This document shows, piece by piece, positions 9,345 through 62,962 of a stretch of 64,000 bases of DNA. The first letter of the stretch is position 1. The number at the start of each line of letters is the position of its first letter. The DNA lies in contig NIVC01000604.1 of assembly GCA_002269645.1 (NCBI GenBank), positions 186,001-250,000 on the forward strand. The letters run 5' to 3'. Below the pieces are notes generated by a model that saw nothing but the letters and a program-made list of their open reading frames with translations, searched no databases and had not been told where the DNA came from. The translations under genes were made by a program, and so were the position numbers. This stretch comes from Macrostomum lignano (lineage: Eukaryota).

Positions 9345-10410
9345 AACACTGCTAGCACTTGGTCCTTCTATGGGACACTGCTAGCACCTGTTCCTTCATT
9401 AGGACGCAACTAGCCCCTGTCTTTCATTAGGACACAGCTAGCACCTGTCTTTCATTAGGACACAGCTAGCACCTGGTCCTTCATTATGACACTGCTAGCA
9501 CCTGGTCCTTCATTAGGACACTGCTAGCACCTGGTCTTTCATTATGACACTGCTAGCACCTGGTCTTTCATTAAGACACTGCTAGCACCTGGTCTTTCAT
9601 TAAGACACTGCTAGCACCTGGTCTTTCATTAAGACACTGCTAGCACCTGTTCTTTCATTAAGACACTGCTAGCACCTGGTCCTTCATTAGGACACTGCTA
9701 GCACCTGATCTTTCATTAGGACACTGCTAGCACCTGGTCTTTCATTAGGACACTGCTAGCACCTGGTCCTTCATTATGACACTGCTAGCACCTGGTCCTT
9801 CATTAAGACACTGCTAACACCTGGTCTTTCATTAGGACACTGCTAGCACCTGGTCTTTCATTATGACACTGCTAGCACCTGGTCTTTCATTATGACACTG
9901 CTAGCACCTGGTCTTTCATTAGGACGCAACTAGCACCTGTCTTTCATTAGGACACAGCTAGCACCTGTCTTTCATTAGGACACAGCTAGCACCTGGTCCT
10001 TCATTAAGACACTGCTAGCTAGCACCTGGTCCTTCATTAGGACACAGCTAGCACCTGGTCTTTCATTAGGACACTGCTAGCACCTGTCTTTAATTAGGAC
10101 ACTGCTAGCACCTGGTCTTTAATTAGGACACTGCTAGCACCTGGTCCTTCATTAGGACACTGCTAGCTAGCACCTGGTCCTTCATTAGGACACTGCTAGC
10201 ACCTGGTCCTTCATTAGGACACTGCTAGCACCTGGTCTTTCATTATGACACTGCTAGCACCTGGTCTTTCATTAAGACACTGCTAGCACCTGGTCTTTCA
10301 TTAAGACACTGCTAGCACCTGTTCTTTCATTAAGACACTGCTAGCACCTGGTCCTTCATTAAGACACTGCTAGCACCTGGTCCTTCATTAGGACACTGCT
10401 AGCACCTGGT
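9345..10410. repeat. 29-bp minisatellite (ACACTGCTAGCACCTGGTCCTTCATTAGG) in LOX intron 1
   Basis: Tandem array read directly. Confidence 0.95.
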
Positions 10411-10471
10411 CGCATATCTCATACCATCAAAACTATCTAACAGCCTATGGACAAATCACCCACCCCTGCAG

Positions 10472-11265: not shown

Positions 11266-11433
11266 TCTAACGGAAAATCCTATTTATTGACTTTAACGCC
11301 ATCAACAATAGCCCTTCATCGCTGTCGAAACTCGCTGGTTTGAACCAATTCGCAGTGCGTTTTATTTTATTAAAAATCCGAATGTCTGACAATACAATGC
11401 AGTATTGAAGAATCTCGTCCCCGCCTTATCCAG

Positions 11434-12204
11434 GACGTACAGTATCACGGAGCCGCTGTCGGTGCAGCGCTGGTCTCCAATGGCGCAGGAGCACGACATT
11501 GTGTTCGGCGCTCAGCGCCTCCGCGGCTGCAACCCGTTCGCTGTCCGAGTGTGCAAAGCAATCCCGGACAACTTCGGCGTGGCCGTCGAATGGCTCAAGC
11601 CGCACCTGGAGGGCTGGACGCTGCAGCACATTCTCGACGCCAGGCGATTGTTCATTGTTGACTACGCCATCATGGAGGGCGTGGAGTGCAAGAACGGCAG
11701 GCAGTTCTGCTCCCCAATGGCCCTGTTTTTTTGGACTGAGCGGCTACAGCTGGTGCCGCTGGCCATTCAGCTCAACCAGACCGTCGGCCCGGCCTCGCCA
11801 GTCATCATGCCGACTGACAGCCCTCACGCCTGGCTGCAGGCCAAGCTGTGGTTCAATCTGGCTGATTCCTGCTATCACCTGGTTGTGCACCGCCTAATGC
11901 ACCATCTGATCCTTGAAGGCGTGTACGTTGCCATGCGGAAGAACCTGGCCCAATCGCATCCTATCTATCAGGCTTTGGCGCCGCATTTTCAACACCTGCT
12001 AGCGGTGAACTCGCGGCTGAAGGACTGGTTCTTCAACGACAGCGGCTGGATTGGCCAGAATATGCAGCTGTCCCGCAAGGGCATCCGGCAGCTGCTGAAG
12101 AAGGCTTATAAAGGCTGGCGATTCGATCAGCACGTTAATATTTATCGGGAGCTGGAGTCGCGCGGAGTGTACGATTCAAGTGTGCTGCCCGGATACCCCT
12201 ATCG
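11434..12204 (+). CDS. Lipoxygenase-like gene, exon 3 (catalytic core)
   Basis: Acceptor TTATCCAG| at 11433. Contains FGAQRLRGCNP, LVPLAIQL, WLQAKLW, H-x4-H (HRLMHH), HPIYQ and YPYR. Donor CG|GTAAGG. Confidence 0.95.
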
Positions 12205-12325
12205 GTAAGGTTTCACTAAGCCTCATAGAATAGCCTCATTGTTTCTCGACAAGAGGGGTTTTATATCTCTGACACAGCCTCTTTCACAACTCCCGAAACG
12301 TTAAGTTAGGGTTAAGGTTAAGCTT

Positions 12326-14378
12326 GAAGATATGAAGTTTTGTAGATATGAAATGTTGGGGATATGAAGTGTCGGGGATATACAGTGGCGGAGATATGAA
12401 GTGTCGGAGATATGAAATGTCAGGGATATGAAATGTCAGGGATATGAAATGTTGGGGATATACAGTGTCGGAGATATGAAATGTCAGGGATATGAAGTGT
12501 CGGGGATATACAGTGGCGGAGTTATGAAGTGTCGGAGATATGAAATGTCAGGGATATGAAATGTCAGGGATATGAAATGTCAGGGATATGAAGTGTCGGG
12601 GATATACAGTGGCGGAGATATGAAGTGTCGGAGATATGAAATGTCAGGGATATGAAATGTCAGGGATATGAAATGTCAGGGATATGAAGTGTCGGGGATA
12701 TACAGTGGCGGAGATATGAAGTGTCGGAGATATGAAATGTCAGGGATATGAAATGTCAGGGATATGAAATGTCAGGGATATGAAATGTCAGGGATATGAA
12801 ATGTCAGGGATATGAAATGTTGGGATATGAAGTGTCGGGGATATACAGTGGCGGAGATATGAAATGTCAGGGATATGAAATGTTGGGGATATACAGTGGC
12901 GGAGATATGAAATGTCAGGGATATGAAATGTCAGGGATATGAAATGTTGGGATATGAAGTGTCGGGGATATACAGTGGCGGAGATATGAAGTGTCGGAGA
13001 TATGAAATGTCAGGGATATGAAGTGTCGGGGATATACAGTGGCGGAGATATGAAATGTCAGGGATATGAAATGTCAGGGATATGAAATGTCAGGGATATG
13101 AAATGTCAGGGATATGAAATGTTGGGATATGAAGTGTCGGGGATATACAGTGGCGGAGATATGAAATGTCAGGGATATGAAATGTCAGGGATATGAAATG
13201 TCAGGGATATGAAATGTTGGGATATGAAGTGTCGGGGATATACAGTGGCGGAGATATGAAGTGTCGGAGATATGAAATGTCAGGGATATGAAGTGTCGGG
13301 GATATACAGTGGCGGAGATATGAAATGTCAGGGATATGAAATGTCAGGGATATGAAATGTCAGGGATATGAAATGTTGGGATATGAAGTGTCGGGGATAT
13401 ACAGTGGCGGAGATATGAAGTGTCGGAGATATGAAATGTCAGGGATATGAAATGTTGGGGATATACAGTGGCGGAGATATGAAGTGTCGGAGATATGAAA
13501 TGTCAGGGATATGAAATGTCAGGGATATGAAATGTCAGGGATATGAAATGTCAGGGATATGAAATGTCAGGGATATGAAATGTTGGGGATATACAGTGGC
13601 GGAGATATGAAGTGTCGGAGATATGAAATGTCAGGGATATGAAGTGTCGGGGATATACAGTGGCGGAGTTATGAAGTGTCGGAGATATGAAATGTCAGGG
13701 ATATGAAATGTCAGGGATATGAAATGTCAGGGATATGAAGTGTCGGGGATATACAGTGGCGGAGATATGAAGTGTCGGCGATATGAAATGTCAGGGATAT
13801 GAAATGTCAGGGATATGAAATGTCAGGGATATGAAGTGTCGGGGATATACAGTGGCGGAGATATGAAGTGTCGGAGATATGAAATGTCAGGGATATGAAA
13901 TGTCAGGGATATGAAATGTCAGGGATATGAAATGTCAGGGATATGAAATGTCAGGGATATGAAGTGTCGGGGATATACAGTGGCGGAGTTATGAAGTGTC
14001 GGAGATATGAAATGTAAGGGATATGAAATGTCAGGGATATGAAATGTCAGGGATATGAAATGTCAGGGATATGAAGTGTCGGGGATATACAGTGGCGGAG
14101 TTATGAAGTGTCGGAGATATGAAATGTCAGGGATATGAAATGTCAGGGATATGAAGTGTCGGGGATATACAGTGGCGGAGATATGAAGTGTCGGAGATAT
14201 GAAATGTCAGGGATATGAAATGTCAGGGATATGAAATGTCAGGGATATGAAGTGTCGGGGATATACAGTGGCGGAGTTATGAAGTGTCGGAGATATGAAA
14301 TGTCAGGGATATGAAATGTCAGGGATATGAAATGTTGGGGATATGAAGTGTCGGGGATATACAGTGGCGGAGATATGA
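12326..14378. repeat. 17-18-bp minisatellite (GATATGAAATGTCAGG-type) with variant units in LOX intron 3
   Basis: Tandem array with interspersed GATATACAGTGGCGGA variants. Confidence 0.96.
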
Positions 14379-14550
14379 GGAGGCGAAGATTTGAAGTTTC
14401 GCAGTTGTGAAAGAGTCTGTTGAACTGATCTGTCGAAATATGACACCTCCCCCGACATTAGAGAAAATGTGTCGGTGAACACTCATTCCAGCAGCTGCAG
14501 ATATGCACCAATTTCATGAAACCCATCCCAATCCTTGCCCGAAACGCCAG

Positions 14551-14902
14551 CGAAGACGCCATGCTGCTCCACAAAGTGATCAACGGCTACAGCGACCGCC
14601 TGTCCCGTCACTACTACGCCAACCCTATGGAGGCGATGAAGCGCCGACTAATGGAAGACATCGAACTGCAGGCCTGGTGGGTTGAAATGACCAACCCGTT
14701 AGAGAAGGGCGGCCTCGGACTCAAAGGTCTGCCCGGCAAAAATGGCATTCAACACGTAGACGAGTTGGTGTCGCTGATAACCAACTTCCTGTTTATGATC
14801 TGCGTGCAGGGCTCCGCCGCCTGGAATCCCCAGTTTGACGAGTACGGATTCGCGCCTAATTATCCCCTGGCCCTGCACGGCTGCCTGCCGCAGGATCCTG
14901 CC
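14551..14902 (+). CDS. Lipoxygenase-like gene, exon 4
   Basis: Acceptor CGCCAG| restores YPYR-ED-AMLL. Contains DIELQAWW, LITNFLF and QFDEYGFAPNYP. Donor GCC|GTGAGT, phase 0. Confidence 0.93.
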
Positions 14903-14949
14903 GTGAGTTTCGCCTTGTTGCCTGTATTTAGAGCTGAGGCGGCACTGTT

Positions 14950-15290
14950 TGGGTGGGTGTTGGTTGGGGGAGTGTTGGGGGTGGGGGTTGGTTGGGGGAT
15001 TGTTGGAGTGGGTGTTGGTTGGGGATTGTTGGAGTGGGTGTTGGTTGGGGATTGTTGGGATGGGTGTTGGTTGGGGGATTGTTGGGGGTGGGTGTTGGTT
15101 GGGGAATTGTTGGAGTGGGTGTTGATTGGGGATTGTTGGGATGGGTGTTGGTTGGGGGATTGTTGGAGTGGCTGTCGATTGGGGGATTGTTGGAGTGGGT
15201 GTTGGTTGGGGGATTGTTGGAGTGGGTGTTGGTGGGGGATTGTTGGGATGGGTGTTGGTTGGGGATTGTTGGGATGGGTGTTGGTTGGGC
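14950..15290. repeat. G/T-rich ~27-bp minisatellite in LOX intron 4
   Basis: GGGGATTGTTGGAGTGGGTGTTGGTT-type units. Confidence 0.9.
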
Positions 15291-15419
15291 AGGATTGCTA
15301 TGGTTGTTGTCAGGTTTAGTAAGATGGGTTGTGTGTCAGTTTAGAAACGTAATTATTCCGGATTATTAAATGTATTAAATTATTATTGCTTCACCTGGAT
15401 TCACCCAAAAACATCGCAG

Positions 15420-15583
15420 GAGGACCTGGCTCTAGACGAGAGCCTCCAGACGCTGCCCTGCAAGCGGGAGTTCCTAGACACGCTGCTGTCCTTTCGCCTG
15501 TGCCAGCGCCAGCGAGGCAGCCGGCTTGGCGAGTACGAGCTGCAGCTGAACCACGATCCAGCGGCCGTCAGGATGCTGCAAGA
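15420..15583 (+). CDS. Lipoxygenase-like gene, exon 5
   Basis: Acceptor CATCGCAG|; translates EDLALDESLQTLPCKREFLDTLL...LGEYE...DPAAVRMLQ. Donor GA|GTGAGT, phase 2. This exon is missing from the ORF track frame. Confidence 0.85.
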
Positions 15584-15717
15584 GTGAGTTTTTATTCTGC
15601 TGTTGTGTTTCTCAGACTGATAAATTACTCACATCAATTTACGCACTACGAAATAAGGATTCATTTTTCACCCGGTTAAAAGCATTCGACAATTCAGTAT
15701 GGTTTCATAGGTTTATT

Positions 15718-15894
15718 GACTCGCCAGTGTTGCTGGTCCGCTCTGTGCACAATTCCATTATTGTGCAACAGCATAGCAGTCTGGGGTCAACGCGAGTCTA
15801 CAGAACGCGTGAGATTGGCCTTCTCCACGAGTCACTGCCGCTGTGCCTCCTTGCACCTTTTGGCTTGACGACTCACTAACGGCTGATTACAGTC
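15718..15894 (+). ncRNA. H/ACA snoRNA copy 1
   Basis: Full hairpin-H-hairpin-ACA; two C>T variants remain G-U compatible. Confidence 0.88.
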
Positions 15895-16221
15895 TCTGAA
15901 ATCTTTTTAGTAATCAGTATGACAAAAACCAAATAATGCTGTAACCTGCTGTAAAACAAAGACTCTAGTTAATATTTAAACAGTTCTTGACTCGCCTACA
16001 ACTTAATAGGCCTTAATGCGTTCTTGGTTGGTGGTCTAATAATTATGCGAAAGTCACTTAAAATGGTTAAACTACGAGTAAGTTAAAATTAGGCTGCATA
16101 ATGTCAGGTAAAGATATCCACGAACTTACAACGGGCAAAAGCACTCTTGTCGTGATACAAGGCATGAAAAGTGCCTGAACAATACATTTTAGTGCTTTAG
16201 CAGACAGGCAGTTTGTTTGCT

Positions 16222-16398
16222 GACTCGCCAGTGTTGCCGGTCCGCTCTGTGCATAATTTCATTGATGTGCAACAGCATAGCAGTCTGGGGTCAACGCGAG
16301 TCTACAGAACGCGTGAGATCGGCCTTCTCCACGAGTCACTGCCGCTATGCCTCCTTGCACCTTTTGGCTTGACGACTCACTAATGGCTGATTACAGTC
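16222..16398 (+). ncRNA. H/ACA snoRNA copy 2
   Basis: Full copy, boxes and pockets intact. Confidence 0.88.
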
Positions 16399-16756
16399 TG
16401 ATATTGTTTTAGCAATAATTTATGGCACGGACCAAACGAAGATTCGACTAGTCGTTAAACATTGACTCAAATTAATATGTAAGCGGTCCACGACTTGATT
16501 ACCACCTTAAAATGATAAATAAGTTTGCAATTAGCTCATCTTTTGTCCAAATACATATCGTAAGCTTTGAATTCAAGCAAAACGTTTGATGTGACTTGTA
16601 GAGGCCTTTTTTGAACTTGACAAATCCGATTACAAATAAAGACACTCTCAAGATACTAAACAAGCCACATGTGTAGTGATCAAAGGCATGCAAAATGTAC
16701 CTCAGCGAAACAGTGATGTAGCTATTGGACAGACGGGCTAGTCAATGATAGTCTCT

Positions 16757-16933
16757 GACTCGCCAGTGTTGCCGGTCCGCTCTGTGCACAAATCCATTAT
16801 TGTGCAACAGCATAGCAGTCTGGGGTCAACGCGAGTCTACAGAACGCGTGAGATCGGCCTTCTCCACGAGTCACTGCCGCTGTGCCTTCTTGCACCTTTT
16901 GGCTTGACGACTCACTAACGGCTGATTACAGTC
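16757..16933 (+). ncRNA. H/ACA snoRNA copy 3
   Basis: Full copy, boxes and pockets intact. Confidence 0.88.
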
Positions 16934-17256
16934 AGATATCTTCTTAGTAATCAGTAAATCAAGGACCAAATAGGGTTTAACCAGTCGTGAAACAAAGACT
17001 CTAGTTATATTTAAACAGTTCTTGGCTCGACTACAACTTAATAGACCTTAATGCATTCTTGGTAATAACTATGCGAAAGTCACTTTAAAATGATTAACTA
17101 CGAGTAAGTTACTAGTGTAAAATTAAGCAACATAATGTCAGGTAAAGATATTTACAAAATTATAAAATCACTTTTGTACAGTAGTGATCCAGTGCATTAA
17201 GAATGCCTGAGAAGTGCAACATCTCTGGTGCTTTAGCAACAGGCAGTTTGTTTGCT

Positions 17257-17433
17257 GACTCGCCAGTGTTGCCGGTCCGCTCTGTGCACAATTTCATTAT
17301 TGTGCAACAGCATAGCAGTCTGGGGTCAACGCGAGTCTACAGAACGCGTGAGATCGGCCTTCTCCACGAGTCGCTGCCGCTGTGCCTTCTTGCACCTTTT
17401 GGCTTGACGTCTCACTAACGGCTGATTACAGTC
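17257..17433 (+). ncRNA. H/ACA snoRNA copy 4
   Basis: Full copy, boxes and pockets intact. Confidence 0.88.
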
Positions 17434-17782
17434 TGATCTATATTGTTGGTAATAAATAGTACGGCAGGACCAAACAGATTTTTCTAGTCGGTACACTGTG
17501 ACTCAGATTAATATCCAAACAGTCTGACTAGATTACAACTTCAAAAGGACAAACAACTTTTGAATTGGCATCGCTTTTGTCTAAATACGAGCGCATATAT
17601 CAGTAAGCTTCAAATTGACTTAGGACCTTTGATGTAACTTGAACGTCTCTGCACTTTCAAATAAAAGCAGTTCTATTGAATGTATATGGAAATTGGAAGT
17701 TAACCTGTATGATGACAAATAGAGATATCTGTACAATGATGGAGTAGATTTTCAGCAGAAAGGTTAATTAATGTTAGTCTCT

Positions 17783-17959
17783 GACTCGCCAGTGTTGCCG
17801 GTCCGCTCTGTGCACAAATCCATTATTGTGCAACAGCATAGCAGTCTGGGGTCAACGCGAGTCTACAAAACGCGTGAGATCGGCCTTCTCCACGAGTCAC
17901 TGCCGCCGTGCCTTCTTGCACCTTTTGGCATGACGACTCACTAACGGCTGATTACAGTC
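17783..17959 (+). ncRNA. H/ACA snoRNA copy 5
   Basis: H box variant ACAAAA still fits ANANNA. Confidence 0.88.
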
Positions 17960-18254
17960 TCTGATATTGTTTTAGCAATATTCTTACGGCGAGGACCAAC
18001 CGAATATTTAACCAGTCATTAAACAATGACTTGGATCATTTTCTAAACAGTCCATCACTTGATGCAAGTTAGCAGTTAGATCCCTAATACTCGTAGATAA
18101 GCAAGAATCACTCTTAATTGAATTAACTAAATGAAAATTAACCCGCATAATGCCAGATAAAGATATATACAAGCTTAAATAGACAAAAGCACTTTTGTAG
18201 TGATCCTGTGCATTAAGAATTCCTGAGAAGTGCGCAACAGGCAGTTTGTTTGCT

Positions 18255-18431
18255 GACTCGCCAGTGTTGCCGGTCCGCTCTTTGCACAATTTCATTATTG
18301 CGCAACAGCATAGCAGTCTGGGGTCAACGCGAGTCTACAGAACGCGTGAGATCGGCCTTCTCCACGAGTCACTGCCGCTGTGCCTCCTTGCACCTTTTGG
18401 CTTGACGACTCACTAACGGCTGATTACAGTC
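18255..18431 (+). ncRNA. H/ACA snoRNA copy 6
   Basis: Copy 1 position + 2537. Confidence 0.88.
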
Positions 18432-18758
18432 TCTGAAATCTTTTTAGTAATCAGTATGACAAAAACCAAATAATGCTGTAACCTGCTGTAAAACAAAGAC
18501 TCTAGTTAATATTTAAACAGTTCTTGACTCGCCTACAACTTAATAGGCCTTAATGCGTTCTTGGTTGGTGGTCTAATAATTATGCGAAAGTCACTTAAAA
18601 TGGTTAAACTACGAGTAAGTTAAAATTAGGCTGCATAATGTCAGGTAAAGATATCCACGAACTTACAACGGGCAAAAGCACTCTTGTCGTGATACAAGGC
18701 ATGAAAAGTGCCTGAACAATACATTTTAGTGCTTTAGCAGACAGGCAGTTTGTTTGCT

Positions 18759-18935
18759 GACTCGCCAGTGTTGCCGGTCCGCTCTGTGCATAATTTCATT
18801 GATGTGCAACAGCATAGCAGTCTGGGGTCAACGCGAGTCTACAGAACGCGTGAGATCGGCCTTCTCCACGAGTCACTGCCGCTATGCCTCCTTGCACCTT
18901 TTGGCTTGACGACTCACTAATGGCTGATTACAGTC
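18759..18935 (+). ncRNA. H/ACA snoRNA copy 7
   Basis: Copy 2 position + 2537. Confidence 0.88.
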
Positions 18936-19293
18936 TGATATTGTTTTAGCAATAATTTATGGCACGGACCAAACGAAGATTCGACTAGTCGTTAAACATT
19001 GACTCAAATTAATATGTAAGCGGTCCACGACTTGATTACCACCTTAAAATGATAAATAAGTTTGCAATTAGCTCATCTTTTGTCCAAATACATATCGTAA
19101 GCTTTGAATTCAAGCAAAACGTTTGATGTGACTTGTAGAGGCCTTTTTTGAACTTGACAAATCCGATTACAAATAAAGACACTCTCAAGATACTAAACAA
19201 GCCACATGTGTAGTGATCAAAGGCATGCAAAATGTACCTCAGCGAAACAGTGATGTAGCTATTGGACAGACGGGCTAGTCAATGATAGTCTCT

Positions 19294-19470
19294 GACTCGC
19301 CAGTGTTGCCGGTCCGCTCTGTGCACAAATCCATTATTGTGCAACAGCATAGCAGTCTGGGGTCAACGCGAGTCTACAGAACGCGTGAGATCGGCCTTCT
19401 CCACGAGTCACTGCCGCTGTGCCTTCTTGCACCTTTTGGCTTGACGACTCACTAACGGCTGATTACAGTC
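19294..19470 (+). ncRNA. H/ACA snoRNA copy 8
   Basis: Copy 3 position + 2537. Confidence 0.88.
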
Positions 19471-19793
19471 AGATATCTTCTTAGTAATCAGTAAATCAAG
19501 GACCAAATAGGGTTTAACCAGTCGTGAAACAAAGACTCTAGTTATATTTAAACAGTTCTTGGCTCGACTACAACTTAATAGACCTTAATGCATTCTTGGT
19601 AATAACTATGCGAAAGTCACTTTAAAATGATTAACTACGAGTAAGTTACTAGTGTAAAATTAAGCAACATAATGTCAGGTAAAGATATTTACAAAATTAT
19701 AAAATCACTTTTGTACAGTAGTGATCCAGTGCATTAAGAATGCCTGAGAAGTGCAACATCTCTGGTGCTTTAGCAACAGGCAGTTTGTTTGCT

Positions 19794-19970
19794 GACTCGC
19801 CAGTGTTGCCGGTCCGCTCTGTGCACAATTTCATTATTGTGCAACAGCATAGCAGTCTGGGGTCAACGCGAGTCTACAGAACGCGTGAGATCGGCCTTCT
19901 CCACGAGTCGCTGCCGCTGTGCCTTCTTGCACCTTTTGGCTTGACGTCTCACTAACGGCTGATTACAGTC
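19794..19970 (+). ncRNA. H/ACA snoRNA copy 9
   Basis: Copy 4 position + 2537. Confidence 0.88.
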
Positions 19971-20319
19971 TGATCTATATTGTTGGTAATAAATAGTACG
20001 GCAGGACCAAACAGATTTTTCTAGTCGGTACACTGTGACTCAGATTAATATCCAAACAGTCTGACTAGATTACAACTTCAAAAGGACAAACAACTTTTGA
20101 ATTGGCATCGCTTTTGTCTAAATACGAGCGCATATATCAGTAAGCTTCGAATTGACTTAGGACCTTTGATGTAACTTGAACGTCTCTGCACTTTCAAATA
20201 AAAGCAGTTCTATTGAATGTATATGGAAATTGGAAGTTAACCTGTATGATGACAAATAGAGATATCTGTACAATGATGGAGTAGATTTTCAGCAGAAAGG
20301 TTAATTAATGTTAGTCTCT

Positions 20320-20496
20320 GACTCGCCAGTGTTGCCGGTCCGCTCTGTGCACAAATCCATTATTGTGCAACAGCATAGCAGTCTGGGGTCAACGCGAGTC
20401 TACAAAACGCGTGAGATCGGCCTTCTCCACGAGTCACTGCCGCCGTGCCTTCTTGCACCTTTTGGCATGACGACTCACTAACGGCTGATTACAGTC
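20320..20496 (+). ncRNA. H/ACA snoRNA copy 10
   Basis: Copy 5 position + 2537. Confidence 0.88.
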
Positions 20497-20791
20497 TCTG
20501 ATATTGTTTTAGCAATATTCTTACGGCGAGGACCAACCGAATATTTAACCAGTCATTAAACAATGACTTGGATCATTTTCTAAACAGTCCATCACTTGAT
20601 GCAAGTTAGCAGTTAGATCCCTAATACTCGTAGATAAGCAAGAATCACTCTTAATTGAATTAACTAAATGAAAATTAACCCGCATAATGCCAGATAAAGA
20701 TATATACAAGCTTAAATAGACAAAAGCACTTTTGTAGTGATCCTGTGCATTAAGAATTCCTGAGAAGTGCGCAACAGGCAGTTTGTTTGCT

Positions 20792-20968
20792 GACTCGCCA
20801 GTGTTGCCGGTCCGCTCTGTGCACAATTTCATTATTGCGCAACAGCATAGCAGTCTGGGGTCAACGCGAGTCTACAGAACGCGTGAGATCGGCCTTCTCC
20901 ACGAGTCACTGCCGCTGTGCCTCCTTGCACCTTTTGGCTTGACGACTCACTAACGGCTGATTACAGTC
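20792..20968 (+). ncRNA. H/ACA snoRNA copy 11
   Basis: Copy 6 position + 2537. Confidence 0.88.
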
Positions 20969-21295
20969 TCTGAAATCTTTTTAGTAATCAGTATGACAAA
21001 AACCAAATAATGCTGTAACCTGCTGTAAAACAAAGACTCTAGTTAATATTTAAACAGTTCTTGACTCGCCTACAACTTAATAGGCCTTAATGCGTTCTTG
21101 GTTGGTGGTCTAATAATTATGCGAAAGTCACTTAAAATGGTTAAACTACGAGTAAGTTAAAATTAGGCTGCATAATGTCAGGTAAAGATATCCACGAACT
21201 TACAACGGGCAAAAGCACTCTTGTCGTGATACAAGGCATGAAAAGTGCCTGAACAATACATTTTAGTGCTTTAGCAGACAGGCAGTTTGTTTGCT

Positions 21296-21472
21296 GACTC
21301 GCCAGTGTTGCCGGTCCGCTCTGTGCATAATTTCATTGATGTGCAACAGCATAGCAGTCTGGGGTCAACGCGAGTCTACAGAACGCGTGAGATCGGCCTT
21401 CTCCACGAGTCACTGCCGCTATGCCTCCTTGCACCTTTTGGCTTGACGACTCACTAATGGCTGATTACAGTC
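21296..21472 (+). ncRNA. H/ACA snoRNA copy 12
   Basis: Copy 7 position + 2537. Confidence 0.88.
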
Positions 21473-21830
21473 TGATATTGTTTTAGCAATAATTTATGGC
21501 ACGGACCAAACGAAGATTCGACTAGTCGTTAAACATTGACTCAAATTAATATGTAAGCGGTCCACGACTTGATTACCACCTTAAAATGATAAATAAGTTT
21601 GCAATTAGCTCATCTTTTGTCCAAATACATATCGTAAGCTTTGAATTCAATCAAAACGTTTGATGTGACTTGTAGAGGCCTTTTTTGAACTTGACAAATC
21701 CGATTACAAATAAAGACACTCTCAAGATACCAAACAAGCCACATGTGTAGTGATCAAAGGCATGCAAAATGTACCTCAGCGAAACAGTGATGTAGCTATT
21801 GGACAGACGGGCTAGTCAATGATAGTCTCT

Positions 21831-22007
21831 GACTCGCCAGTGTTGCCGGTCCGCTCTGTGCACAAATCCATTATTGTGCAACAGCATAGCAGTCTGGGGT
21901 CAACGCGAGTCTACAGAACGCGTGAGATCGGCCTTCTCCACGAGTCACTGCCGCTGTGCCTTCTTGCACCTTTTGGCTTGTCGACTCACTAACGGCTGAT
22001 TACAATC
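21831..22007 (+). ncRNA. H/ACA snoRNA copy 13
   Basis: Full copy ending ACA-ATC. Confidence 0.87.
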
Positions 22008-22138
22008 TGTTGTTTTTGAGAATGGTTAATTGCCATTTTCATATTATATTTCTTTGGTGATTAGGTTGAAAGAATTGAAAAACGAATAGTAATTTCTCGA
22101 AACTGCATTAGACTTTAAGGCTGGTAATTAGGTACGAT

Positions 22139-22210
22139 GCGGAGTTGCTCAGCGGTAAACGCGTCTTACTCTCTTGCCAAACTCCTAGTTCGACTCCATG
22201 CGCGACCGCA
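22139..22210 (+). mobile_element. Degenerate tRNA-like / tRNA-derived SINE head interrupting the array
   Basis: A-box-like TTGCTCAGCGGTA, B-box-like AGTTCGACTCC, partial GCGG/CCGC acceptor stem. The anticodon arm does not pair. Confidence 0.4.
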
Positions 22211-22667
22211 TTCATTTGTTGCTTTTACACAGAAAATTTCCCGTAGCTATCTTACGATTCACCCATGAGAGCCAACCCAAGACACAGAGTGTAGATGTTT
22301 GAGGATTAGAAGGTCGGAGTCGATGTACAGTGTACACCTTGTATGAGCATGCTTTCTGAAGACCACAGGATGGACAGAATTGCCTCAGCGCTGGTTGTGA
22401 GACGATGTCGCCGATACCGTTGCACCAGAGTGTCCACAACCTTCCAGATATTGTTGTTAGGGCTGTTAAGTGATAAATGTTCTACTGGTAATAAAGAAGC
22501 AAAGATAATTACAGATAAATCCTTGTATGCCATGTAGTGTCTAAAGAAAGGTGTCTTGCGGAGCAATGGATCATTTTAATAGTGACAAAACGCCCATTAT
22601 GCAATAAGATTACCAGGCAGTCATCCGCGTAGCATTGGCTTATACACCATTGGTTACTTAGGCTGCT

Positions 22668-22844
22668 GACTCGCCAGTGTTGCCGGTCCGCTCTGTGCAT
22701 AATTTCATTGATGTGCAACAGCATAGCAGTCTGAGGTCAACGCGAGTCTACAGAACGCGTGAGATCGGCCTTCTCCACGAGTCACTGCCGCTATGCCTCC
22801 CTGCACCTTTTGGCTTGACGACTCACTAATGGCTGATTACAGTC
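22668..22844 (+). ncRNA. H/ACA snoRNA copy 14
   Basis: Full copy, boxes and pockets intact. Confidence 0.87.
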
Positions 22845-23202
22845 TGATATTGTTTTAGCAATAATTTATGGCACGGACCAAACGAAGATTCGACTAGTCG
22901 TTAAACATTGACTCAAATTAATATGTAAGCGGTCCACGACTTGATTACCACCTTAAAATGATAAATAAGTTTGCAATTAGCTCATCTTTTGTCCAAATAC
23001 ATATCGTAAGCTTTGAATTCAAGCAAAACCTTTGATGTGACTTGTAGAGGCCTTTTTTGAACTTGACAAATCCGATTACAAATAAAGACACTCTCAAGAT
23101 ACTAAACAAGCCACATGTGTAGTGATCAAAGGCATGCAAAATGTACCTCAGCGAAACAGTGATGTAGCTATTGGACAGACGGGCTAGTCAATGATAGTCT
23201 CT

Positions 23203-23379
23203 GACTCGCCAGTGTTGCCGGTCCGCTCTGTGCACAAATCCATTATTGTGCAACAGCATAGCAGTCTGGGGTCAACGCGAGTCTACAGAACGCGTGAGAT
23301 CGGCCTTCTCCACGAGTCACTGCCGCTGTGCCTTCTTGCACCTTTTGGCTTGACGTCTCACTAACGGCTGATTACAGTC
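23203..23379 (+). ncRNA. H/ACA snoRNA copy 15
   Basis: Full copy, boxes and pockets intact. Confidence 0.87.
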
Positions 23380-23707
23380 TGATATCTTTTTAGTAATCAG
23401 TATATCAAGGACCAAATAGGGTTTAACCAGTCGTTAAACAAAGACTCTAGTTAATATTTAAACAGTTCTTGGCTCGCCTACAACTTAATAGACTTTAGTG
23501 CGTTCTTGGTTTGTGCCTTTAATAACTATGGGAAGTCACTTTAAAATGATTAAACTACGAGTTAGTTAAAATTAGGCTGCATAATGTCAGGTGAAGATAT
23601 TTACCAAATTACAACTTACAAAAGCACTTTTTTAGTGATCAAGTGCATTAAAAATGCCTGACAAATGCAAAGTATCTAGTGCTTTAGCAACAGGCAGTTT
23701 GTTTGCT

Positions 23708-23884
23708 GACTCGCCAGTGTTGCCGGTCCGCTCTGTGTATAATTCCAATATTGTGCAACAGCATAGCAGTCTGGGGTCAGCGCGAGTCTACAGAACGCGT
23801 GAGATCGGCCTTCTCCACGAGTCACTGCCGCTGTGCCTTCTTGCACCTTTTGGCTTGACGACTCACTAACGGCTGATTACATTA
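23708..23884 (+). ncRNA. H/ACA snoRNA copy 16
   Basis: Full copy ending ACA-TTA, 81 nt before the 3' splice site. Pocket variant GTCAG can form G-U with the target. Confidence 0.85.
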
Positions 23885-23965
23885 CTTACTTTACATGGTA
23901 GAGCAAAGATTAGGAGCGAAGACAGTCAAGAAAAAAATGGAACCCGCCACCGCTAATATTCCCAG

Positions 23966-24086
23966 GTTCAAGGAGGAATTGGCGGCCGCCAGCGCCAGCA
24001 TCAAATCGCGCAACAGCAACCGCGACCCGGTGTACCTGTACACTGCACTGGATCCTGAGCGCATGCTGAATCACCTGGTTGTGTGA
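23966..24086 (+). CDS. Lipoxygenase-like gene, terminal exon 6
   Basis: CTAAT branch-like site and TTCCCAG| acceptor. Translates (E)FKEELAAASASIKSRNSNRDPVYLYTALDPERMLNHLVV*, a LOX C-terminal pattern. The six exons sum to 2070 nt = 689 aa + stop. Confidence 0.88.
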
Positions 24087-25504: not shown

Positions 25505-26915
25505 ATTATACTGATGGATATCTATATCCTGCTCTGATGGATTTCTATATCCTACTCTGGATGTCTATACCCTGCTCTGATGGATGTCTATATCCTACTC
25601 TGGATGTCTATACCCTGCTCTGATGGATTTCTATATCCTACTCTGAATGTTTATACCCTGCTCTGATGGATGTCTATATCCTACTCTGGATGTCTATACC
25701 CTGCTCTGATGGATTTCTATATCCTACTCTGGATGTCTATACCCTGCTCTGATGGATGTCTATATCCTGCTCTGGATGTCTATACCCTGCTCTGATCGAT
25801 ATCTATATCCTACTCTGGATGTCTATACCCTGCTCTGATCGATATCTATATCCTGCTCTAATGGTGTCTATATCCTGCTCTAATCGATGTTTATATCCTC
25901 CTCTGATGGATGTCAATATCCTGTTCTGATAGATGTCTATATCCTGCTCTAATCAATGTCTATATCCTGCTCTAATCGATGTTTATATCCTCCTCTGATG
26001 GATGTCTATATCCTGCTCTGACGGATGTCTATATCCTGCTCTAATCGATGTTTATATCCTGCTCTAATGAATGTCTATATACTGCTCTAATCCATGTCTA
26101 TATCCTGCTCTGATGAATGTCTATATCCTGCTCTTATAGATGTCTATATCCTGCTCTTATGGATGTCTATATCCTGCTCTTATGGATGTCTATATCCTGC
26201 TCTAATAGTGTCTATATCCTTCTCTAAGTGATGTCTACATCCTACTCTGATGGATGTCAATATCCTGCTCTATTGAATGTCTATATCCTGCTCTAATGAA
26301 TTTCTATATCCTGCTCTGATCGATATCTATATCCTGCTCTAATGGTGTCTATATCCTGCTCTAATGAATGTCAATATCCTGCTCTGATGGATGTCAATAT
26401 CCTGCTCTGATGGATGTCTATATCCTGCTCTCATGAATTTCTATATCCTGCTCTTATGGATGTCTATATCCTGCTCTAATCCATGTCTATATCCTGCTCT
26501 GATGAATGTCTATATCCTGCTCTTATGGATGTCTATATCCTGCTCTTATGGATGTCTATATCCTGCTCTTATGGATGTCTATATCCTGCTCTGATGGATG
26601 TCAATATCCTGCTCTAATAGTGTCTATATCCTTCTCTAAGTGATGTCTACATCCTACTCTGATGGATGTCAATATCCTGCTCTAATAGTGTCTATATCCT
26701 TCTCTAAGTGATGTCTACATCCTACTCTGATGGATGTCAATATCCTGCTCTAATGAATGTCTATATCCTGCTCTAATGAATGTCTATATCCTGCTCTAAT
26801 GAATGTCTATATCCTGCTCTAATGAATGTCTATTTCCTGCTCTTATGGATGTCTATATCCTGCTGTGATGGATGTCTATATCCTGCTGTGATGGATGTCT
26901 ATATCCTGCTGTGAT
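25505..26915. repeat. ~23-bp minisatellite (GATGGATGTCTATATCCTGCTCT)
   Basis: Tandem array read directly. Confidence 0.95.
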
Positions 26916-27884
26916 ATATGCACGAGCGTATATTTCCGAGACTGATAGATGTCTATATGAGATTGACGGATGACTATATTCGAGACTGATATATCCGACA
27001 ACAGAGCGATCAAACACTGACTGCTTCAGTCAAGCACTGCAAGTTTGGTGTTGAGTCAAGCCGCTTGTTGAGCAGCTCTGACAGGCAGACACGCAAGTCA
27101 GATCACCGCCAGAAGGAGCAACTCCCTGAATTCGTCTCTTAGCGCCACTCCTCTACTTCGCAGAAAGTTTGAGTGTCTTTAGCCGCGGGGAAGTCGGCTG
27201 GCTGGGAAGAGGGGCGGCGGGAGGCCGAGACCCCCAACGGCTTGAAGAGGTCCCGCTGATGCTAGCAATTAGTGGCCGCAGAAAGAGAGACAGACGGACA
27301 GACAGACAGGCTGCAGATAGGCAGCCAGTCGCACAATAAGACGCTCTTCTCGCCTGCTCTCCCCGCTGCCTCGGCATCGCCTCTCGAGGCGCAGTTTTAA
27401 CAGTGTAGCACACAGACACGGGTTTTGACTGACAGCTGCCAGTCAGTATCTTGGACGGTGTCAGGGGGAAGGCTGCCGGCCTAAGCAAGCTCAAGGAGGA
27501 CCGGGAGTGATTGTTGAGGGCGCCTGATTGGCAGCGGGGCCTCCCGTCGATGGAGGGTGTCGGGAGGGAGCGGGGGCGGCCTGTCCATGATGATGCTACT
27601 CTGGGGCCGGGCAGGCGGCCAGATTGACAGCTGGATATGCCGAGGGGACAGTGAAAGCTGCGACTGGCCTTTCCCGGGATTTCTGCGGCAACGGTTGCAG
27701 CAACTGGCGGAGCAGGAATTGGAAGCTGCGCTGATCCGTTCTCCCGCTGCGGTGGAGCAACAAACAAATGGATATAATTGCGGGAGTTACATTTATTGAG
27801 GGGTTAGAAGAAACTAACCAAAATAGGTCAAATGACTCGTCAGTTCTGATCGAAATATAAAAAACTATTGCGATAACTGAGAAG

Positions 27885-30800
27885 GCAGGAATAGATACTT
27901 GGATAGACATCATGAAGGCAGGAATAGATACTTGGATAGAGATCATGAAGGCAGGAATAGATGCTTGGATAGAGATCATGAAGGCAGGAATAGATACTTG
28001 GATAGACATCATGAAGGCAGGAATAGATACTTGGATAGAGATCATGAAGGCAGGAATAGATACTTGGATAGAGATCGTGAAGGCAGGAATAGATACTTGG
28101 ATAGAGATGATGAAGGCAGGAATAGATACTTGGATAAAGATCATGAAGACAGGAATAGATTTTTGGATAGAGATCATGAAGGTGGAATAGATGCTTGGAT
28201 AGAGATCGTGAAGGCAGGAATAGATACTTGGATAGAGATCGTGAAGGCAGGAATAGATATTTGGATAGAGATCATGAAGGCAGGAATAGATACTTGGATA
28301 GAGATCATGAAGGCAGGAATAGATACTTGGATAGAGATCGTGAAGGCAGGAATAGATACTTGGTTAGAGATCGTGAAGGCAGGAATAGATATTTGGATAG
28401 AGATCATGAAGGCAGGAATAGATACTTGGATAGAGATCGTGAAGGCAGGAATAGATACTTGGATAGAGATCGTGAAGGCAGGAATAGATACTTGGATAGA
28501 GATGATGAAGGCAGGAATAGATACTTGGATAGAGATTATGAAGACAGGAATAGATTTTTGGATAGAGATCATGAAGGTGGAATAGATGCTTGGATAGAGA
28601 TCATGAAGGCAGGAATAGATACTTGGATAGAGATCATGAAGACAGGAATAGATTTTTGGATAGAGATCATGAAGGTGGAATAGATGCTTGGATAGAGATC
28701 ATGAAGGCAGGAATAGATATTTGGATAGAGACCGTGAAGGCAGGAATAGATACTTGGATAGAGATGATGAAGGCAGGAATAGATACTTGGATAGAGATCA
28801 TGAAGACAGGAATAGATTTTTGGATAGAGATCATGAAGGTGGAATAGATGCTTGGATAGAGATCATGAAGGCAGGAATAGATATTTGGATAGAGATCATG
28901 AAGGTGGAATAGATGCTTGGATAGAGATCATGAAGGCAGGAATAGATACTTGGATAGAGATCATGAAGGTGGAATAGATGCTTGGATAGAGATCATGAAG
29001 GCAGGAATAGATACTTGGATAGAGATCGTGAAGGCAGGAATAGATACTTGGATAGAGATCATGAAGGCAGGAATAGATACTTGGATAGAGATCATGAAGG
29101 CAGGAATAGATACTTGGATAGAGATCATGAAGGCAGGAATAGATTTTTGGATAGAGATCATGAAGGTGGAATAGATGCTTGGATAGAGATCGTAAAGGCA
29201 GGAATAGATGCTTGGATAGAGATCACGAAGGCAGGAATAGATACTTGGATAGAGATCATGAAGGCAGGAATAGATACTTGGATAGAGACCGTGAAGGCAG
29301 GAATTGATACTTGGATAGAGATCGTGAAGGCAGGAATAGATACTTGGATAGAGATCGTGAAGGCAGGAATAGATATTTGGATAGAGACCGTGAAGGCAGG
29401 AATAGATGCTTGGATAGAGATGATGAAGGCAGGAATAGATACTTGGATAGAGATCATGAAGGCAGGAATAGATTTTTGGATAGAGATCATGAAGGTGGAA
29501 TAGATGCTTGGATAGAGATCGTGAAGGCAGGAATAGATACTTGGATAGAGATCGTGAAGGCAGGAATAGATACTTGGATAGAGATCATGAAGGTGGAATA
29601 GATGCTTGGATAGAGATCATGAAGGCAGGAATAGATATTTGGATAGAGATCATGAAGGTGGAATAGATATTTGGATAGAGATCATGAAGGCAGGAATAGA
29701 TACTTGGATAGAGATCATAAAGGCAGGAATAGATACTTGGATAGAGATCATGAAGGCAGGAATAGATACTTGGATAGAGACCGTGAAGGCAGGAATAGAT
29801 TTTTGGATAGAGATCATGAAGGTGGAATAGATGCTTGGATAGAGATCGTGAAGGCAGGAATAGATACTTGGATAGAGATCATGAAGGCAGGAATAGATAC
29901 TTGGATAGAGACCGTGAAGGCAGGAATTGATACTTGGATAGAGATCATGAAGGCAGGAATTGATACTTGGATAGAGATCATGAAGGCAGGAATAGATACT
30001 TGGATAGAGACCGTGAAGGCAGGAATTGATACTTGGATAGAGATCATGAAGGCAGGAATAGATACTTGGATAGAGACCGTGAAGGCAGGAATAGATTTTT
30101 GGATAGAGATCATGAAGGTGGAATAGATGCTTGGATAGAGATCGTGAAGGCAGGAATAGATACTTGGATAGAGATCATGAAGGCAGGAATAGATACTTGG
30201 ATAGAGACCGTGAAGGCAGGAATTGATACTTGGATAGAGATCATGAAGGCAGGAATTGATACTTGGATAGAGATCATGAAGGCAGGAATAGATACTTGGA
30301 TAGAGACCGTGAAGGCAGGAATTGATACTTGGATAGAGATCATGAAGGCAGGAATAGATACTTGGATAGAGATCATGAAGGCAGGAATAGATACTTGGAT
30401 AGAGATCATGAAGGCAGGAATTGATACTTGGATAGAGATCGTGAAGGCAGGAATAGATACTTGGTTAGAGATCGTGAAGGCAGGAATAGATATTTGGATA
30501 GAGACCGTGAAGGCAGGAATAGATGCTTGGATAGAGATCATGAAGGCAGGAATAGATACTTGGATAGAGATCATGAAGGCAGGAATAGATACTTGGATAG
30601 AGATCATGAAGGCAGGAATAGATTTTTGGATAGAGATCATGAAGGTGGAATAGATGCTTGGATAGAGATCGTGAAGGCAGGAATAGATACTTGGATAGAG
30701 ATCGTGAAGGCAGGAATAGATACTTGGATAGAGATCATGAAGACAGGAATAGATGCTTGGATAGAGATCATGAAGGCAGGAATAGATATTTGGATAGAGA

Positions 30801-31057
30801 TCATGAAGGTGGAATAGATGCTTGGATAGAGATCATGAAGGCAGGAATAGATACTTGGATAGAGATCATAAAGGCAGGAATAGATACTTGGATAGAGATC
30901 ATGAAGGCAGGAATAGATACTTGGATAGAGATCATGAAGGTGGAATAGATGCTTGGATAGAGATCGTGAAGGTGGAATAGATGCTTGGATAGAGATCATA
31001 AAGGCAGGAATAGATACTTGGATAGAGATCATGAAGGCAGGAATAGATATTTGGATA
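27885..31057. repeat. 33-bp minisatellite (GATAGAGATCATGAAGGCAGGAATAGATACTTG) with shorter variant units
   Basis: Tandem array; source of the DRDHEGRNRYL / WIEIMKAGIDT pseudo-ORFs. Confidence 0.97.
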
Positions 31058-31644
31058 TATTTTTAGCTTAGCGACCAGACGTCTCCACCTGCTAGCTCGG
31101 CCAGATAATATTAATTGCCCTTGGAGACTCAGATAAATTTTCAAAATTGTTTCCAGGCAGTTGATGATTGACAGGTTCGAGCAAATTTTCGGGGACGAAG
31201 AAATCGCCTTTTGTCTCCAAGCGAATAGGGGGAACTGGGCCCAGGGTTGCTAGGCCTGAGTTACGCTTGGATCCCACCCCGCACAAGTCTGCAGAGCTGC
31301 GGTGGAGTCTGCGACACAGTGCATGTTTGAGCTGCATCGGACTGCTCAGGTTTAACAATGTTTTTTTTCCGCTATCTTATCGCTGCAGCCGGCAAAGCTC
31401 GATGGGAGGCGGGGTGGATGAAAGGCCGAAGCCTCGGTTTGCTTTTAATCTTAGCCGCTCCGAGTTCGCTTTGCGAGGCCGGCGCCTCCACACAAAGCGT
31501 CCAATTTTTTGAATCGGGACCATTTTTTGCCGGTTCAGCTGGCGCGGAGGTCGAATATTCCCATGAATCCCGACCGCATGTCTGATGCGATTTGGGCCAA
31601 GTTGGCTCTGCTGTTTGCAAGTGCTTCACCTGGCTTCATTGTTA

Positions 31645-32430
31645 GAGTGGGTGTGGAATGGTGGGGCTGTTACTGAGGGTGTCACAGAGTGGGTGTGGAA
31701 TGGTGGAGCTGTTACTGAGGGTGTTACAGAGTGGGTGTGGAATGGTGGGGCTGTTACTGAGGGTGTCACAGAGTGGGTGTGGAATGGTGGGGCTGTTACT
31801 GAGGGTGTTACAGAGTGGGTGTGGAATGGTGGGGCTGTTACTGAGGGTGTCACAGAGTGGGTGTGGAATGGTGGGGCTGTTACTGAGGGTGTTGCAAAGT
31901 GGGTGTGGAATGGTGGGGCTGTTACTGAGGGTGTTGCAGAGTGGGTGTGGAATGGTGGGGCTGTTACTGAGGGTGTTGCAGAGTGGGTGTGGAATGGTGG
32001 GGCTGTTACTGAGGGTGTTGCAGAGTGGGTGTGGAATGGTGGGGCTGTTACTGAGGGTGTCACAGAGTGGGTGTGGAATGGTGGGGCTGTTACTGAGGGT
32101 GTTGCAAAGTGGGTGTGGAATGGTGGGGCTGTTACTGAGGGTGTCACAGAGTGGGTGTGGAATGGTGGGGCTGTTACTGAGGGTGTTGCAGAGTGGGTGT
32201 GGAATGGTGGAGCTGTTACTGAGGGTGTTACAGAGTGGGTGTGGAATGGTGGAGCTGTTACTGAGGGTGTCACAGAGTGGGTGTGGAATGGTGGAGCTGT
32301 TACTGAGGGTGTCACAGAGTGGGTGTGGAATGGTGGGGCTGTTACTGAGGGTGTCACAGAGTGGGTGTGGAATGGTGGAGCTGTTACTGAGGGTGTCACA
32401 GAGTGGGTGTGGAATGGTGGGGCTGCTACT
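31645..32430. repeat. 42-bp minisatellite (GAGTGGGTGTGGAATGGTGGGGCTGTTACTGAGGGTGTCACA)
   Basis: About 18-19 near-identical units, open in several frames. Confidence 0.96.
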
Positions 32431-49744: not shown

Positions 49745-50204
<460 letters not shown>

Positions 50205-50236
50205 TGCAAGAGTCTCCAACCGATTGGCATTCGCAG

Positions 50237-62952: not shown

Positions 62953-62962
62953 CTGCGGGCCC
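62901..62962 (+). other. -1 ribosomal frameshift signal: G GGA AAC slip site plus H-type pseudoknot
   Basis: Heptamer at 62901-62907 in the gag frame, 6-nt spacer, stem 1 62914-62922 / 62936-62944, stem 2 62927-62935 / 62954-62962. Confidence 0.85.

Follow-up and report, generated by a model that had tools for sequence, protein, structure and literature searches.

Intronic clusters of small nucleolar RNA (snoRNA) genes have reportedly been described in rice and Drosophila by Liang (2002) and Huang (2004, 2005). Here we characterize a 64-kb stretch of DNA (hereafter the window) that carries a tandem array of 16 near-identical elements, or blocks, in the last intron of a lipoxygenase gene, and we predict with good, if not complete, confidence that these blocks are real box H/ACA snoRNA genes. 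The rice and Drosophila clusters likewise hold several snoRNA genes, including locally duplicated H/ACA isoforms, in one sense-strand host intron (PMC2780460). By the same definition (two or more snoRNA genes in one intron, on the host sense strand) the present locus has 16 copies within 15584-23965. It differs from those clusters in its 16 near-identical copies, its higher-order repeat, its flatworm-like genome and its lipoxygenase host; these features, together with the combination of targets in one RNA, are what is new. The original prediction had called a polycistronic cluster of this kind unusual, but several H/ACA snoRNAs per intron are an arrangement already known (PMC2780460).

The SNORD116/SNORD115 arrays offer a second comparison, as there too a repeated snoRNA unit lies inside a longer RNA polymerase II transcript (PMC5054931). 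Those units are box C/D snoRNAs, their host is non-coding, and in mouse each repeated intron carries a single snoRNA (PMC5054931), whereas the array described here is of H/ACA type, lies wholly within one intron of a coding gene, and shows no more than weak hints of internal splice sites.

With respect to predicted function, the closest systems are two guides of 18S ribosomal RNA (rRNA). In yeast, pseudouridine (Psi) 1191 is guided by snR35 as the first step of m1acp3-Psi formation and Psi1290, 99 nucleotides (nt) away, by snR83, whose second target is Psi1415 (PMC5699541). In chicken, 18S-1206 is served by the 5' hairpin of the single-copy ACA13 through 5+6 nt, and 18S-1305, again 99 nt away, by the 3' hairpin of ACA4 through 7+5 nt (PMC2653536). 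The RNA predicted here would address the same two uridines, that of SNORA13 (ACA13)/snR35 (yeast U1191) by its 5' hairpin (5+5 nt) and the UUAGU-UG-GUGGAG site of SNORA4 (ACA4)/snR83/RUF3 by its 3' hairpin (5+6 nt, all Watson-Crick), so that hairpin assignment and duplex lengths match those of chicken ACA13 and ACA4. Unlike SNORA13 it has a second well-matched pocket for the other site, it pairs Psi1290 with Psi1191 where yeast snR83 pairs it with Psi1415, and it is present in 16 copies where a single ACA13 copy is listed for chicken. No similarity in sequence or structure to the Rfam families SNORA13 and SNORA4 was detected on the block at E <= 10, and we regard the array RNA as a putative functional analogue of SNORA13/SNORA4, not as a demonstrated family member.

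Anatomy of the repeat array

A repeat search of the window returned one element with 16 copies within 15714-24003. The array proper occupies 15718-23884 on the + strand and consists of exactly 16 blocks of 174-177 nt each, on which repeat search, MAFFT alignment and blastn agree and which reproduces the coordinates, strand and copy number of the original prediction to the nucleotide. With one block as query, blastn found 16 sites, all on the + strand and with 94-100% identity, and no copy in the rest of the window. TRF did not detect the array, its longest period being 500. The blocks are as follows.

15718..23884, + strand: whole array, 16 H/ACA-type blocks and spacers
15718..15894, + strand: copy 1
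16222..16398, + strand: copy 2
16757..16933, + strand: copy 3, reference for sub-features; one base (block position 36) off the 16-copy majority
17257..17433, + strand: copy 4; one upper-stem pair lost by A154U, one pair with C152 gained by A117G
17783..17959, + strand: copy 5, H box ACAAAA
18255..18431, + strand: copy 6
18759..18935, + strand: copy 7, same sequence as copy 2
19294..19470, + strand: copy 8, same sequence as copy 3
19794..19970, + strand: copy 9, same sequence as copy 4
20320..20496, + strand: copy 10, same sequence as copy 5 (H box ACAAAA)
20792..20968, + strand: copy 11
21296..21472, + strand: copy 12, same sequence as copy 2
21831..22007, + strand: copy 13, tail ACAATC; atypical 660-nt spacer on its 3' side
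22668..22844, + strand: copy 14; G67A breaks the C16-G67 pair
23203..23379, + strand: copy 15
23708..23884, + strand: copy 16; A73G in the 5' pocket (can still pair with target U); tail ACATTA

Copy-to-copy spacing is 472-535 bp, except for one gap of 837 bp, and the spacing pattern recurs as a higher-order repeat of five units with a period of 2537 bp, along which two spacer classes alternate. This 2537-bp block is present about three times at ~100% identity, so that only some 6-8 units are evolutionarily independent; these would be the old units of the array and the remainder recent amplification. When copies were aligned together with their flanks (MAFFT), the core proved near-invariant from (C)TGACTCGCC to GGCTGATTACA(GTC), that is, to a GATTACA(GTC) end, and similarity collapsed on both sides. 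Pairwise identity is 92.5-99.4% between blocks and 38-87% between the spacers 3' of the same units, in agreement with the earlier description of an almost unchanged element between strongly diverged spacers.

The host gene and its last intron

An open reading frame (ORF) at 11405-12208 matches the Pfam Lipoxygenase profile (PF00305, E = 4e-26), and a search of 5.8 billion proteins placed flatworm sequences nearest to it (Echinostoma caproni, 58% identity; Dibothriocephalus latus, 51%), which supports a platyhelminth origin of the sequence. The gene parts that bear on the position of the array are listed below.

11405..12253, + strand: upstream lipoxygenase exon (Pfam PF00305)
14465..14908, + strand: lipoxygenase exon, found by tblastn with flatworm homologues
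15400..15583, + strand: penultimate lipoxygenase exon, ending ..DPAAVRMLQE; 5' limit approximate (tblastn ~15378-15584)
15584..23965, + strand: last intron, 8382 nt, GTGAGT...CCCAG
23966..24086, + strand: last lipoxygenase exon FKEELAAASASIKSRNSNRDPVYLYTALDPERMLNHLVV; stop codon 24084-24086

Directly 3' of the last repeat copy, a 3' splice site ..TTCCCAG|GTTCAAGG at 23965/23966 opens a reading frame. The predicted junction 15583^23966 (..RMLQE followed by the GTGAGT donor) is in frame and reads FKEELAAASASIKSRN...NHLVV*. The joined exons match positions 464-655 of the 673 of the Pfam Lipoxygenase profile (E = 5e-11), and a mollusc lipoxygenase aligns with both, its ..AVKILDK falling where the upstream exon ends and its FRSKLAKIGMDIEKRN where the last exon starts. 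Since the junction is in frame and continues the lipoxygenase match, we infer that 15584-23965 is the last intron and is spliced out. All 16 copies lie inside it in sense orientation, as had been predicted, copy 1 beginning 135 nt past the 5' splice site and copy 16 ending 81 nt before the 3' splice site.

The start of this intron (15584-15615) also resembles a complete micro-intron of 32 nt, GTGAGT...TTTCTCAG. Use of the micro-intron acceptor would give ..RMLQE-LINYSHQFTHYEIRIHFSPG with a stop at 15677-15679, 39 nt before copy 1, and the predicted product would be a lipoxygenase without its C-terminal iron-binding end; the acceptor may be an alternative one or a decoy.

The deposited lipoxygenase model of Echinostoma ends ..TILEE at a TAA inside a GA|GTAAGT donor (15190-15210 of the Echinostoma caproni contig, L001), a donor position equal to 15583/15584 of the window, by which the public model is truncated at the intron homologous to the snoRNA-bearing one. 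With regard to the same host intron in other flatworm genomes, a comparison proposed with the original prediction, the Echinostoma contig shows no related element in the 619 bp of the homologous intron that it contains.

Box H/ACA architecture of the block

A single-sequence minimum-energy fold and an RNAalifold consensus agree on two hairpins, a single-stranded hinge with ACAGAA, and an ACA tail. Hairpin 1 spans block positions 1-81 with the lower stem GACUCGC/GCGAGUC (1-7/75-81), and hairpin 2 spans positions 97-170 with the lower stem AUCGGCC/GGCUGAU and the upper stem GAGUC/GACUC; it is followed by U-ACA at positions 171-174 and three nt more. In copy 3 these parts lie as follows.

16757..16837, + strand: 5' hairpin; lower stem 1-7/75-81
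16764-16771 and 16824-16830, + strand: 5' pocket strands, positions 8-15 (CAGUGUUG) and 68-74 (GGUCAAC)
16839..16844, + strand: H box ACAGAA (ANANNA)
16853..16926, + strand: 3' hairpin; lower stem 97-103/164-170, upper stem 112-116/153-157
16860-16867 and 16914-16919, + strand: 3' pocket strands, positions 104-111 (UUCUCCAC) and 158-163 (ACUAAC)
16928..16930, + strand: ACA box

The H box at positions 83-88 stands one nt past the lower stem of hairpin 1, and its variant ACAAAA in copies 5 and 10 still conforms to ANANNA. The ACA at positions 172-174 is invariant, likewise one nt past its lower stem, and conservation ends 0-3 nt beyond it, GTC following in 14 of the 16 copies. The conserved edges of the block coincide with the base of hairpin 1 and with ACA plus three nt. 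In H/ACA guides the target pocket lies 14-16 nt from the H or ACA box. Counted on the consensus structure, the distance from the upper stem is 15 nt to the H box (positions 68-82) and 14 nt to the ACA (158-171), and the internal loops of both hairpins are sized like pseudouridylation pockets. All of the motifs listed in the original prediction (GACTCGC/GCGAGTC, ACAGAA, ATCGGCC/GGCTGAT, GAGTC/GACTC, and ACA with three further nt) were recovered, including its tolerance of ACAAAA. The apical loops read UUCCAUUA (positions 36-43) and CUUCUU or CUCCUU (130-135), and a CAB box (UGAG), the mark of an H/ACA small Cajal body RNA, is absent from both. RNA from the minus strand was rejected as a candidate, with a fold z-score of +0.53 and no box architecture.

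Predicted rRNA targets

Complementarity of the pockets to two conserved 18S sequences was tested on real ribosomal DNA (rDNA). Complete eukaryotic rDNA units were taken from metagenome contigs, three units being annotated by Rfam, and in two of them (L003 and L036) every U of the 18S, 5.8S and 28S rRNA was scanned for bipartite pairing flush with an unpaired U-N. A scan of viral contigs for 18S gave no match.

For the 3' pocket (UUCUCCAC / ACUAAC), the best site in the whole rDNA is 18S GUUCUUAGU-UG-GUGGAG (UUAGU-UG-GUGGAG), where 5+6 = 11 contiguous Watson-Crick pairs stand flush with the unpaired U-N; the target uridine is the U of 18S UUAGUUGG. Only 6 and 8 of 1000 shuffled pockets reached this score in the two rDNA units (p ~0.007). 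For the 5' pocket (CAGUGUUG / GGUCAAC), the helix-31 loop of 18S, UUGAC-UC-AACAC, is the joint-best site, with 5+5 Watson-Crick pairs. A distance of 99 nt separates the two target uridines in L003 (1194 and 1293) as well as in L036. At least 120 metagenome contigs also contain both target motifs at a spacing of 70-100 nt; these contigs, having been selected by exact match to both motifs, are informative on the flanks alone; these matches are in line with our treatment of both sequences as universally conserved 18S.

What makes the assignments of the 5' and 3' pockets convincing is that both uridines are established pseudouridines of yeast and chicken with the same 99-nt spacing; we place high confidence in the target of the 3' pocket and moderate confidence in that of the 5' pocket. 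Of the ~1300 rRNA uridines a few dozen are known pseudouridines, and by our estimate the best match of a random pocket would fall on one of these in only a few percent of cases, so that a joint coincidence of both pockets is very unlikely. Complementarity to two known 18S pseudouridine sites with the correct 14-15 nt geometry supports the H/ACA reading of the original prediction.

Sequence constraint on the blocks

Core positions (lower stems, pockets and boxes) are variable in 4 of 66 cases compared with 19 of 108 elsewhere in the block (Fisher p = 0.037). All four core changes appear tolerable for the predicted function: A73G can form G-U with the target, C99U retains a G-U pair, the change at position 86 falls on an N of ANANNA, and that at position 163 stands opposite no paired target base. 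The blocks carry lineage-specific variants that track the duplication history, which argues that they have not simply been homogenized by gene conversion, yet their divergence is at least six times smaller than that of their own spacers. This pattern speaks for purifying selection on an RNA with the same limits as the block.

Favored explanation and points against it

Taken as a whole, we consider it highly likely that the array is an intron-hosted cluster of two-hairpin H/ACA guides for 18S rRNA. Each block would be the gene for one such snoRNA, guiding pseudouridylation of small-subunit rRNA. Its 3' pocket would bind the 18S segment 5'-UUAGU-[U G]-GUGGAG-3', where yeast has Psi1290 (snR83) and where vertebrate ACA4/SNORA4 acts. 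The segment bound by its 5' pocket is most likely 5'-UUGAC-[U C]-AACAC-3' in the helix-31 loop, where yeast has Psi1191 (snR35), where vertebrate ACA13/SNORA13 acts, and where the pseudouridine begins m1acp3-Psi formation. One RNA would in this way replace two separate vertebrate or yeast guides. The array probably grew by tandem duplication, first of a two-unit repeat and next of the five-unit 2537-bp repeat, with the RNA core constrained while the spacers drifted. The present analysis shows the repeat anatomy, the position and strand within the intron, the H/ACA architecture, the complementarity of pockets and targets and the constraint pattern; expression, RNA ends, protein partners and actual pseudouridylation, like the mode of release, are inferred.

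Several observations weigh against this explanation. The + strand fold is no stabler than that of shuffled sequence (z = -0.21), and a compensatory double change occurs in none of the 51 predicted pairs, the copies being very similar. Of 10 variable paired positions, six break the pair (28, 44, 47, 67, 126 and 154) and four keep it through G-U (17, 31, 33 and 99), by which the earlier statement that most variants retain pairing through G-U was overstated; apart from G67A, the pair-breaking changes lie in the apical parts of the hairpins. With 177 nt, the RNA would also be longer than the chicken H/ACA snoRNAs of PMC2653536, which measure 128-147 nt. The scanned rRNA comes from unrelated eukaryotes and not from the organism of the array. 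The 5' pocket match is not significant alone, as 12-14% of shuffled pockets equal it; the helix-31 duplex leaves one guide G unpaired atop each strand of this pocket, and the site ties with 28S UUUGAUU-UU-CAGUAC (6+6 pairs, four of them G-U). No orthologue was retrieved from another species using the Echinostoma contig, Logan contigs (too short), exact look-ups of two window ORFs, or a spliced C-terminal query. Rfam, finally, gave no match, whether with the window at the gathering threshold or with the block at E <= 10 (2.7-kb and 191-nt searches).

With covariation lacking and fold energy ordinary, the predicted structure rests on its architecture. Known families (small nuclear RNA (snRNA), spliced-leader RNA, ribozymes and snoRNA families) were rejected for the block, on which none of the three Rfam searches gave a match, and the covariance-model check of one copy, which had been suggested with the original prediction, thus came out negative at E <= 10. 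A missing match is expected because flatworm snoRNAs escape homology searches, by which none but U3 was found in schistosomes (PMC2770079).

In one spacer type (units 4 and 9) a weak SNORD44 match was obtained at 17704-17728 (E = 5.3) with a C-box-like AUGAUGA, and a D box might be seen in the CUGA with which every block but that of copy 1 opens. This box C/D candidate was rejected as probably a chance match, being confined to that one spacer type and having no terminal stem.

Proposed release of the snoRNAs and alternative explanations

Under the H/ACA cluster explanation, the 16 sense-strand genes would most likely be transcribed as part of the lipoxygenase pre-mRNA. Every unit would be bound by H/ACA proteins, and the intron would be spliced out and debranched. 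Endonucleolytic cuts, or splicing at 5'-splice-site-like motifs in the spacers, could then remove the spacers, and exonucleolytic trimming would stop at each protected small nucleolar ribonucleoprotein (snoRNP), with a yield of up to 16 snoRNAs per host transcript. In introns with two snoRNAs, exonuclease trimming halts at the outermost snoRNPs and produces snoRNA-ended long non-coding RNAs (sno-lncRNAs), of which H/ACA-ended examples exist (PMC5054931). Because trimming halts there, 16 free snoRNAs would need endonucleolytic cuts or extra splicing; we hold low confidence in any specific mechanism.

Processing hairpins in the spacers were considered and rejected, since spacer folds are no stabler than shuffled sequence (z = -0.83 and +0.56). 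Spacers of both classes have GTAAG[TC] 338-360 nt from the block start, and those of class A have CAG|GT[AG]AAG, of which the array holds 6 of the 10 occurrences in the window, where 1.2 would be expected overall.

16078, 16560, 17104, 17603 (and repeat copies): spacer GTAAG[TC] motifs
16105, 17139, 18642, 19676, 21179, 23588: CAG|GT[AG]AAG motifs

These 5'-splice-site-like motifs may mark internal mini-exons or stepwise splice points, but they amount to a hint of internal splicing, because they were inherited by duplication.

The units may be genuine H/ACA units and yet have as their main product one or more long intron-derived RNAs of sno-lncRNA type, with H/ACA snoRNP ends and surviving spacers. 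Such an RNA requires an intron with at least two snoRNAs, and the present one has 16 units; in two-snoRNA introns the intervening RNA is protected (PMC5054931), and the spacers contain no unusually stable hairpin that would serve as an endonuclease mark. The low identity of the spacers (38-87%) is nevertheless not suggestive of a functional long RNA, and the intronic clusters of rice and Drosophila are reported as snoRNA genes (PMC2780460). Pockets are moreover intact in nearly all copies, internal ones included, with a single wobble-compatible A73G in copy 16, and this suggests that every unit serves as a guide. We therefore consider this outcome unlikely as the main one; it can coexist with free snoRNAs.

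An elaboration of the same idea, which we hold to be similarly doubtful, is that the 8.4-kb intron yields a multi-snoRNP, H/ACA-capped long RNA or ladder of RNAs, or is spliced stepwise at GTAAGT and CAG|GTAAAG, such that the output of a bifunctional guide is set by transcription and splicing of the lipoxygenase gene. If true, the first step of m1acp3-Psi formation would depend on the transcription and splicing of a tissue-restricted lipoxygenase gene. A link of the array to tissue expression of its host, as raised in the original prediction, is speculation.

Tandem arrays of spliced-leader RNA, snRNA and 5S genes are usually transcribed from their own promoters, and the regular 472-535 bp units resemble such arrays of independently transcribed small-RNA genes. 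If each ~500-bp unit were an H/ACA gene with its own promoter, the intron position would be incidental; in favor of this, a short GTGAT-containing motif ~80-90 nt 5' of the blocks is the sole stretch common to all spacer classes. The immediate upstream sequence, however, differs between spacer classes, a T-run terminator is not conserved downstream (copies 3 and 4 have none), and all copies are in host sense within one intron, the last ending 81 nt from the 3' splice site. We give independent promoters little chance, and transcription within the host remains the preferred source of the H/ACA snoRNAs.

The window is full of tandem repeats, the three higher-order copies are ~100% identical, such that much of the array is very young, and covariation and an Rfam match are absent with a fold z near 0. 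All of this would fit a non-functional long-period satellite whose core is homogenized by gene conversion and whose H/ACA fold and rRNA matches are coincidental. Against it, the limits of conservation coincide exactly with the predicted RNA limits, and lineage-specific variants persist in the blocks, yet these diverge at least six times more slowly than the spacers. The 3' pocket furthermore falls on a known pseudouridine at p ~0.007, and the 5' pocket is joint-best on a second one 99 nt away, with the same hairpins as the vertebrate guides. A satellite is accordingly very improbable.

That the block is a coding exon, for example one of a set of duplicated alternative terminal lipoxygenase exons, is hardly credible. 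In its favor, one frame of the block stays open over 53 codons, a second frame (..TIPLLCNSIAV.., with CNSIAV in every block, positions 47-66) resembles the lipoxygenase C-terminus ..PNSIAI, and in copy 14 (22668-22844) a G-to-A change gives TGA directly after NSIAV, but the true terminal exon 23966-24086 follows the array and completes the domain in frame, the changes that distinguish the copies are mostly non-synonymous in either open frame, none of the 5.8 billion proteins matches a six-frame translation of the block, and AG dinucleotides upstream of the block stand at offsets to it that are mutually out of frame, for which reasons the reading was rejected and the CNSIAV likeness taken as coincidental.

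Significance of the array

As flatworm snoRNAs are almost unannotated owing to their escape from homology search (PMC2770079), the H/ACA array provides a well-supported candidate guide for two universally conserved 18S pseudouridines, and the m1acp3-Psi guide matters for small-subunit biogenesis in yeast (PMC5699541). The array would also serve as a natural example for how many snoRNAs can be released from one intron, and of selection preserving an RNA core while duplication and drift remodel the spacers.

Other features of the window

The window is unusually dense in minisatellites, whose periods range from 14-72 nt and whose copy numbers reach 155; because it is packed with them, tandem amplification seems common in this genome. 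Several have a strong GC skew (12-14 kb and 28-32 kb), and those at 12328-14401 and 14946-15289 sit within introns of the lipoxygenase gene.

2133-5658, 9346-10411, 12328-14401, 14946-15289, 25511-26915, 27881-31057: minisatellites
31644-32433, 34044-34714, 41503-42687, 43938-44709, 45631-46118: minisatellites, continued

An ORF of 390 amino acids on the - strand (36445-37617) with many coiled-coil Pfam matches was rejected as a gene, being an artefact of a 14-nt tandem repeat at 36450-37345. A long ORF on the + strand (49697-51793, ~65% GC) encodes a TALE-class homeobox at residues 565-604 (Homeobox_KN, E = 6e-18); a (GTCT)n repeat at 49749-50204 covers some of the 5' part of this ORF, by which the true exon is shorter. 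Near the end of the window, an ORF at 62880-63992 on the + strand contains an aspartyl protease domain and, after it, the first part of a reverse transcriptase; it is a fragment of a long terminal repeat (LTR) retrotransposon pol gene running past the window end.

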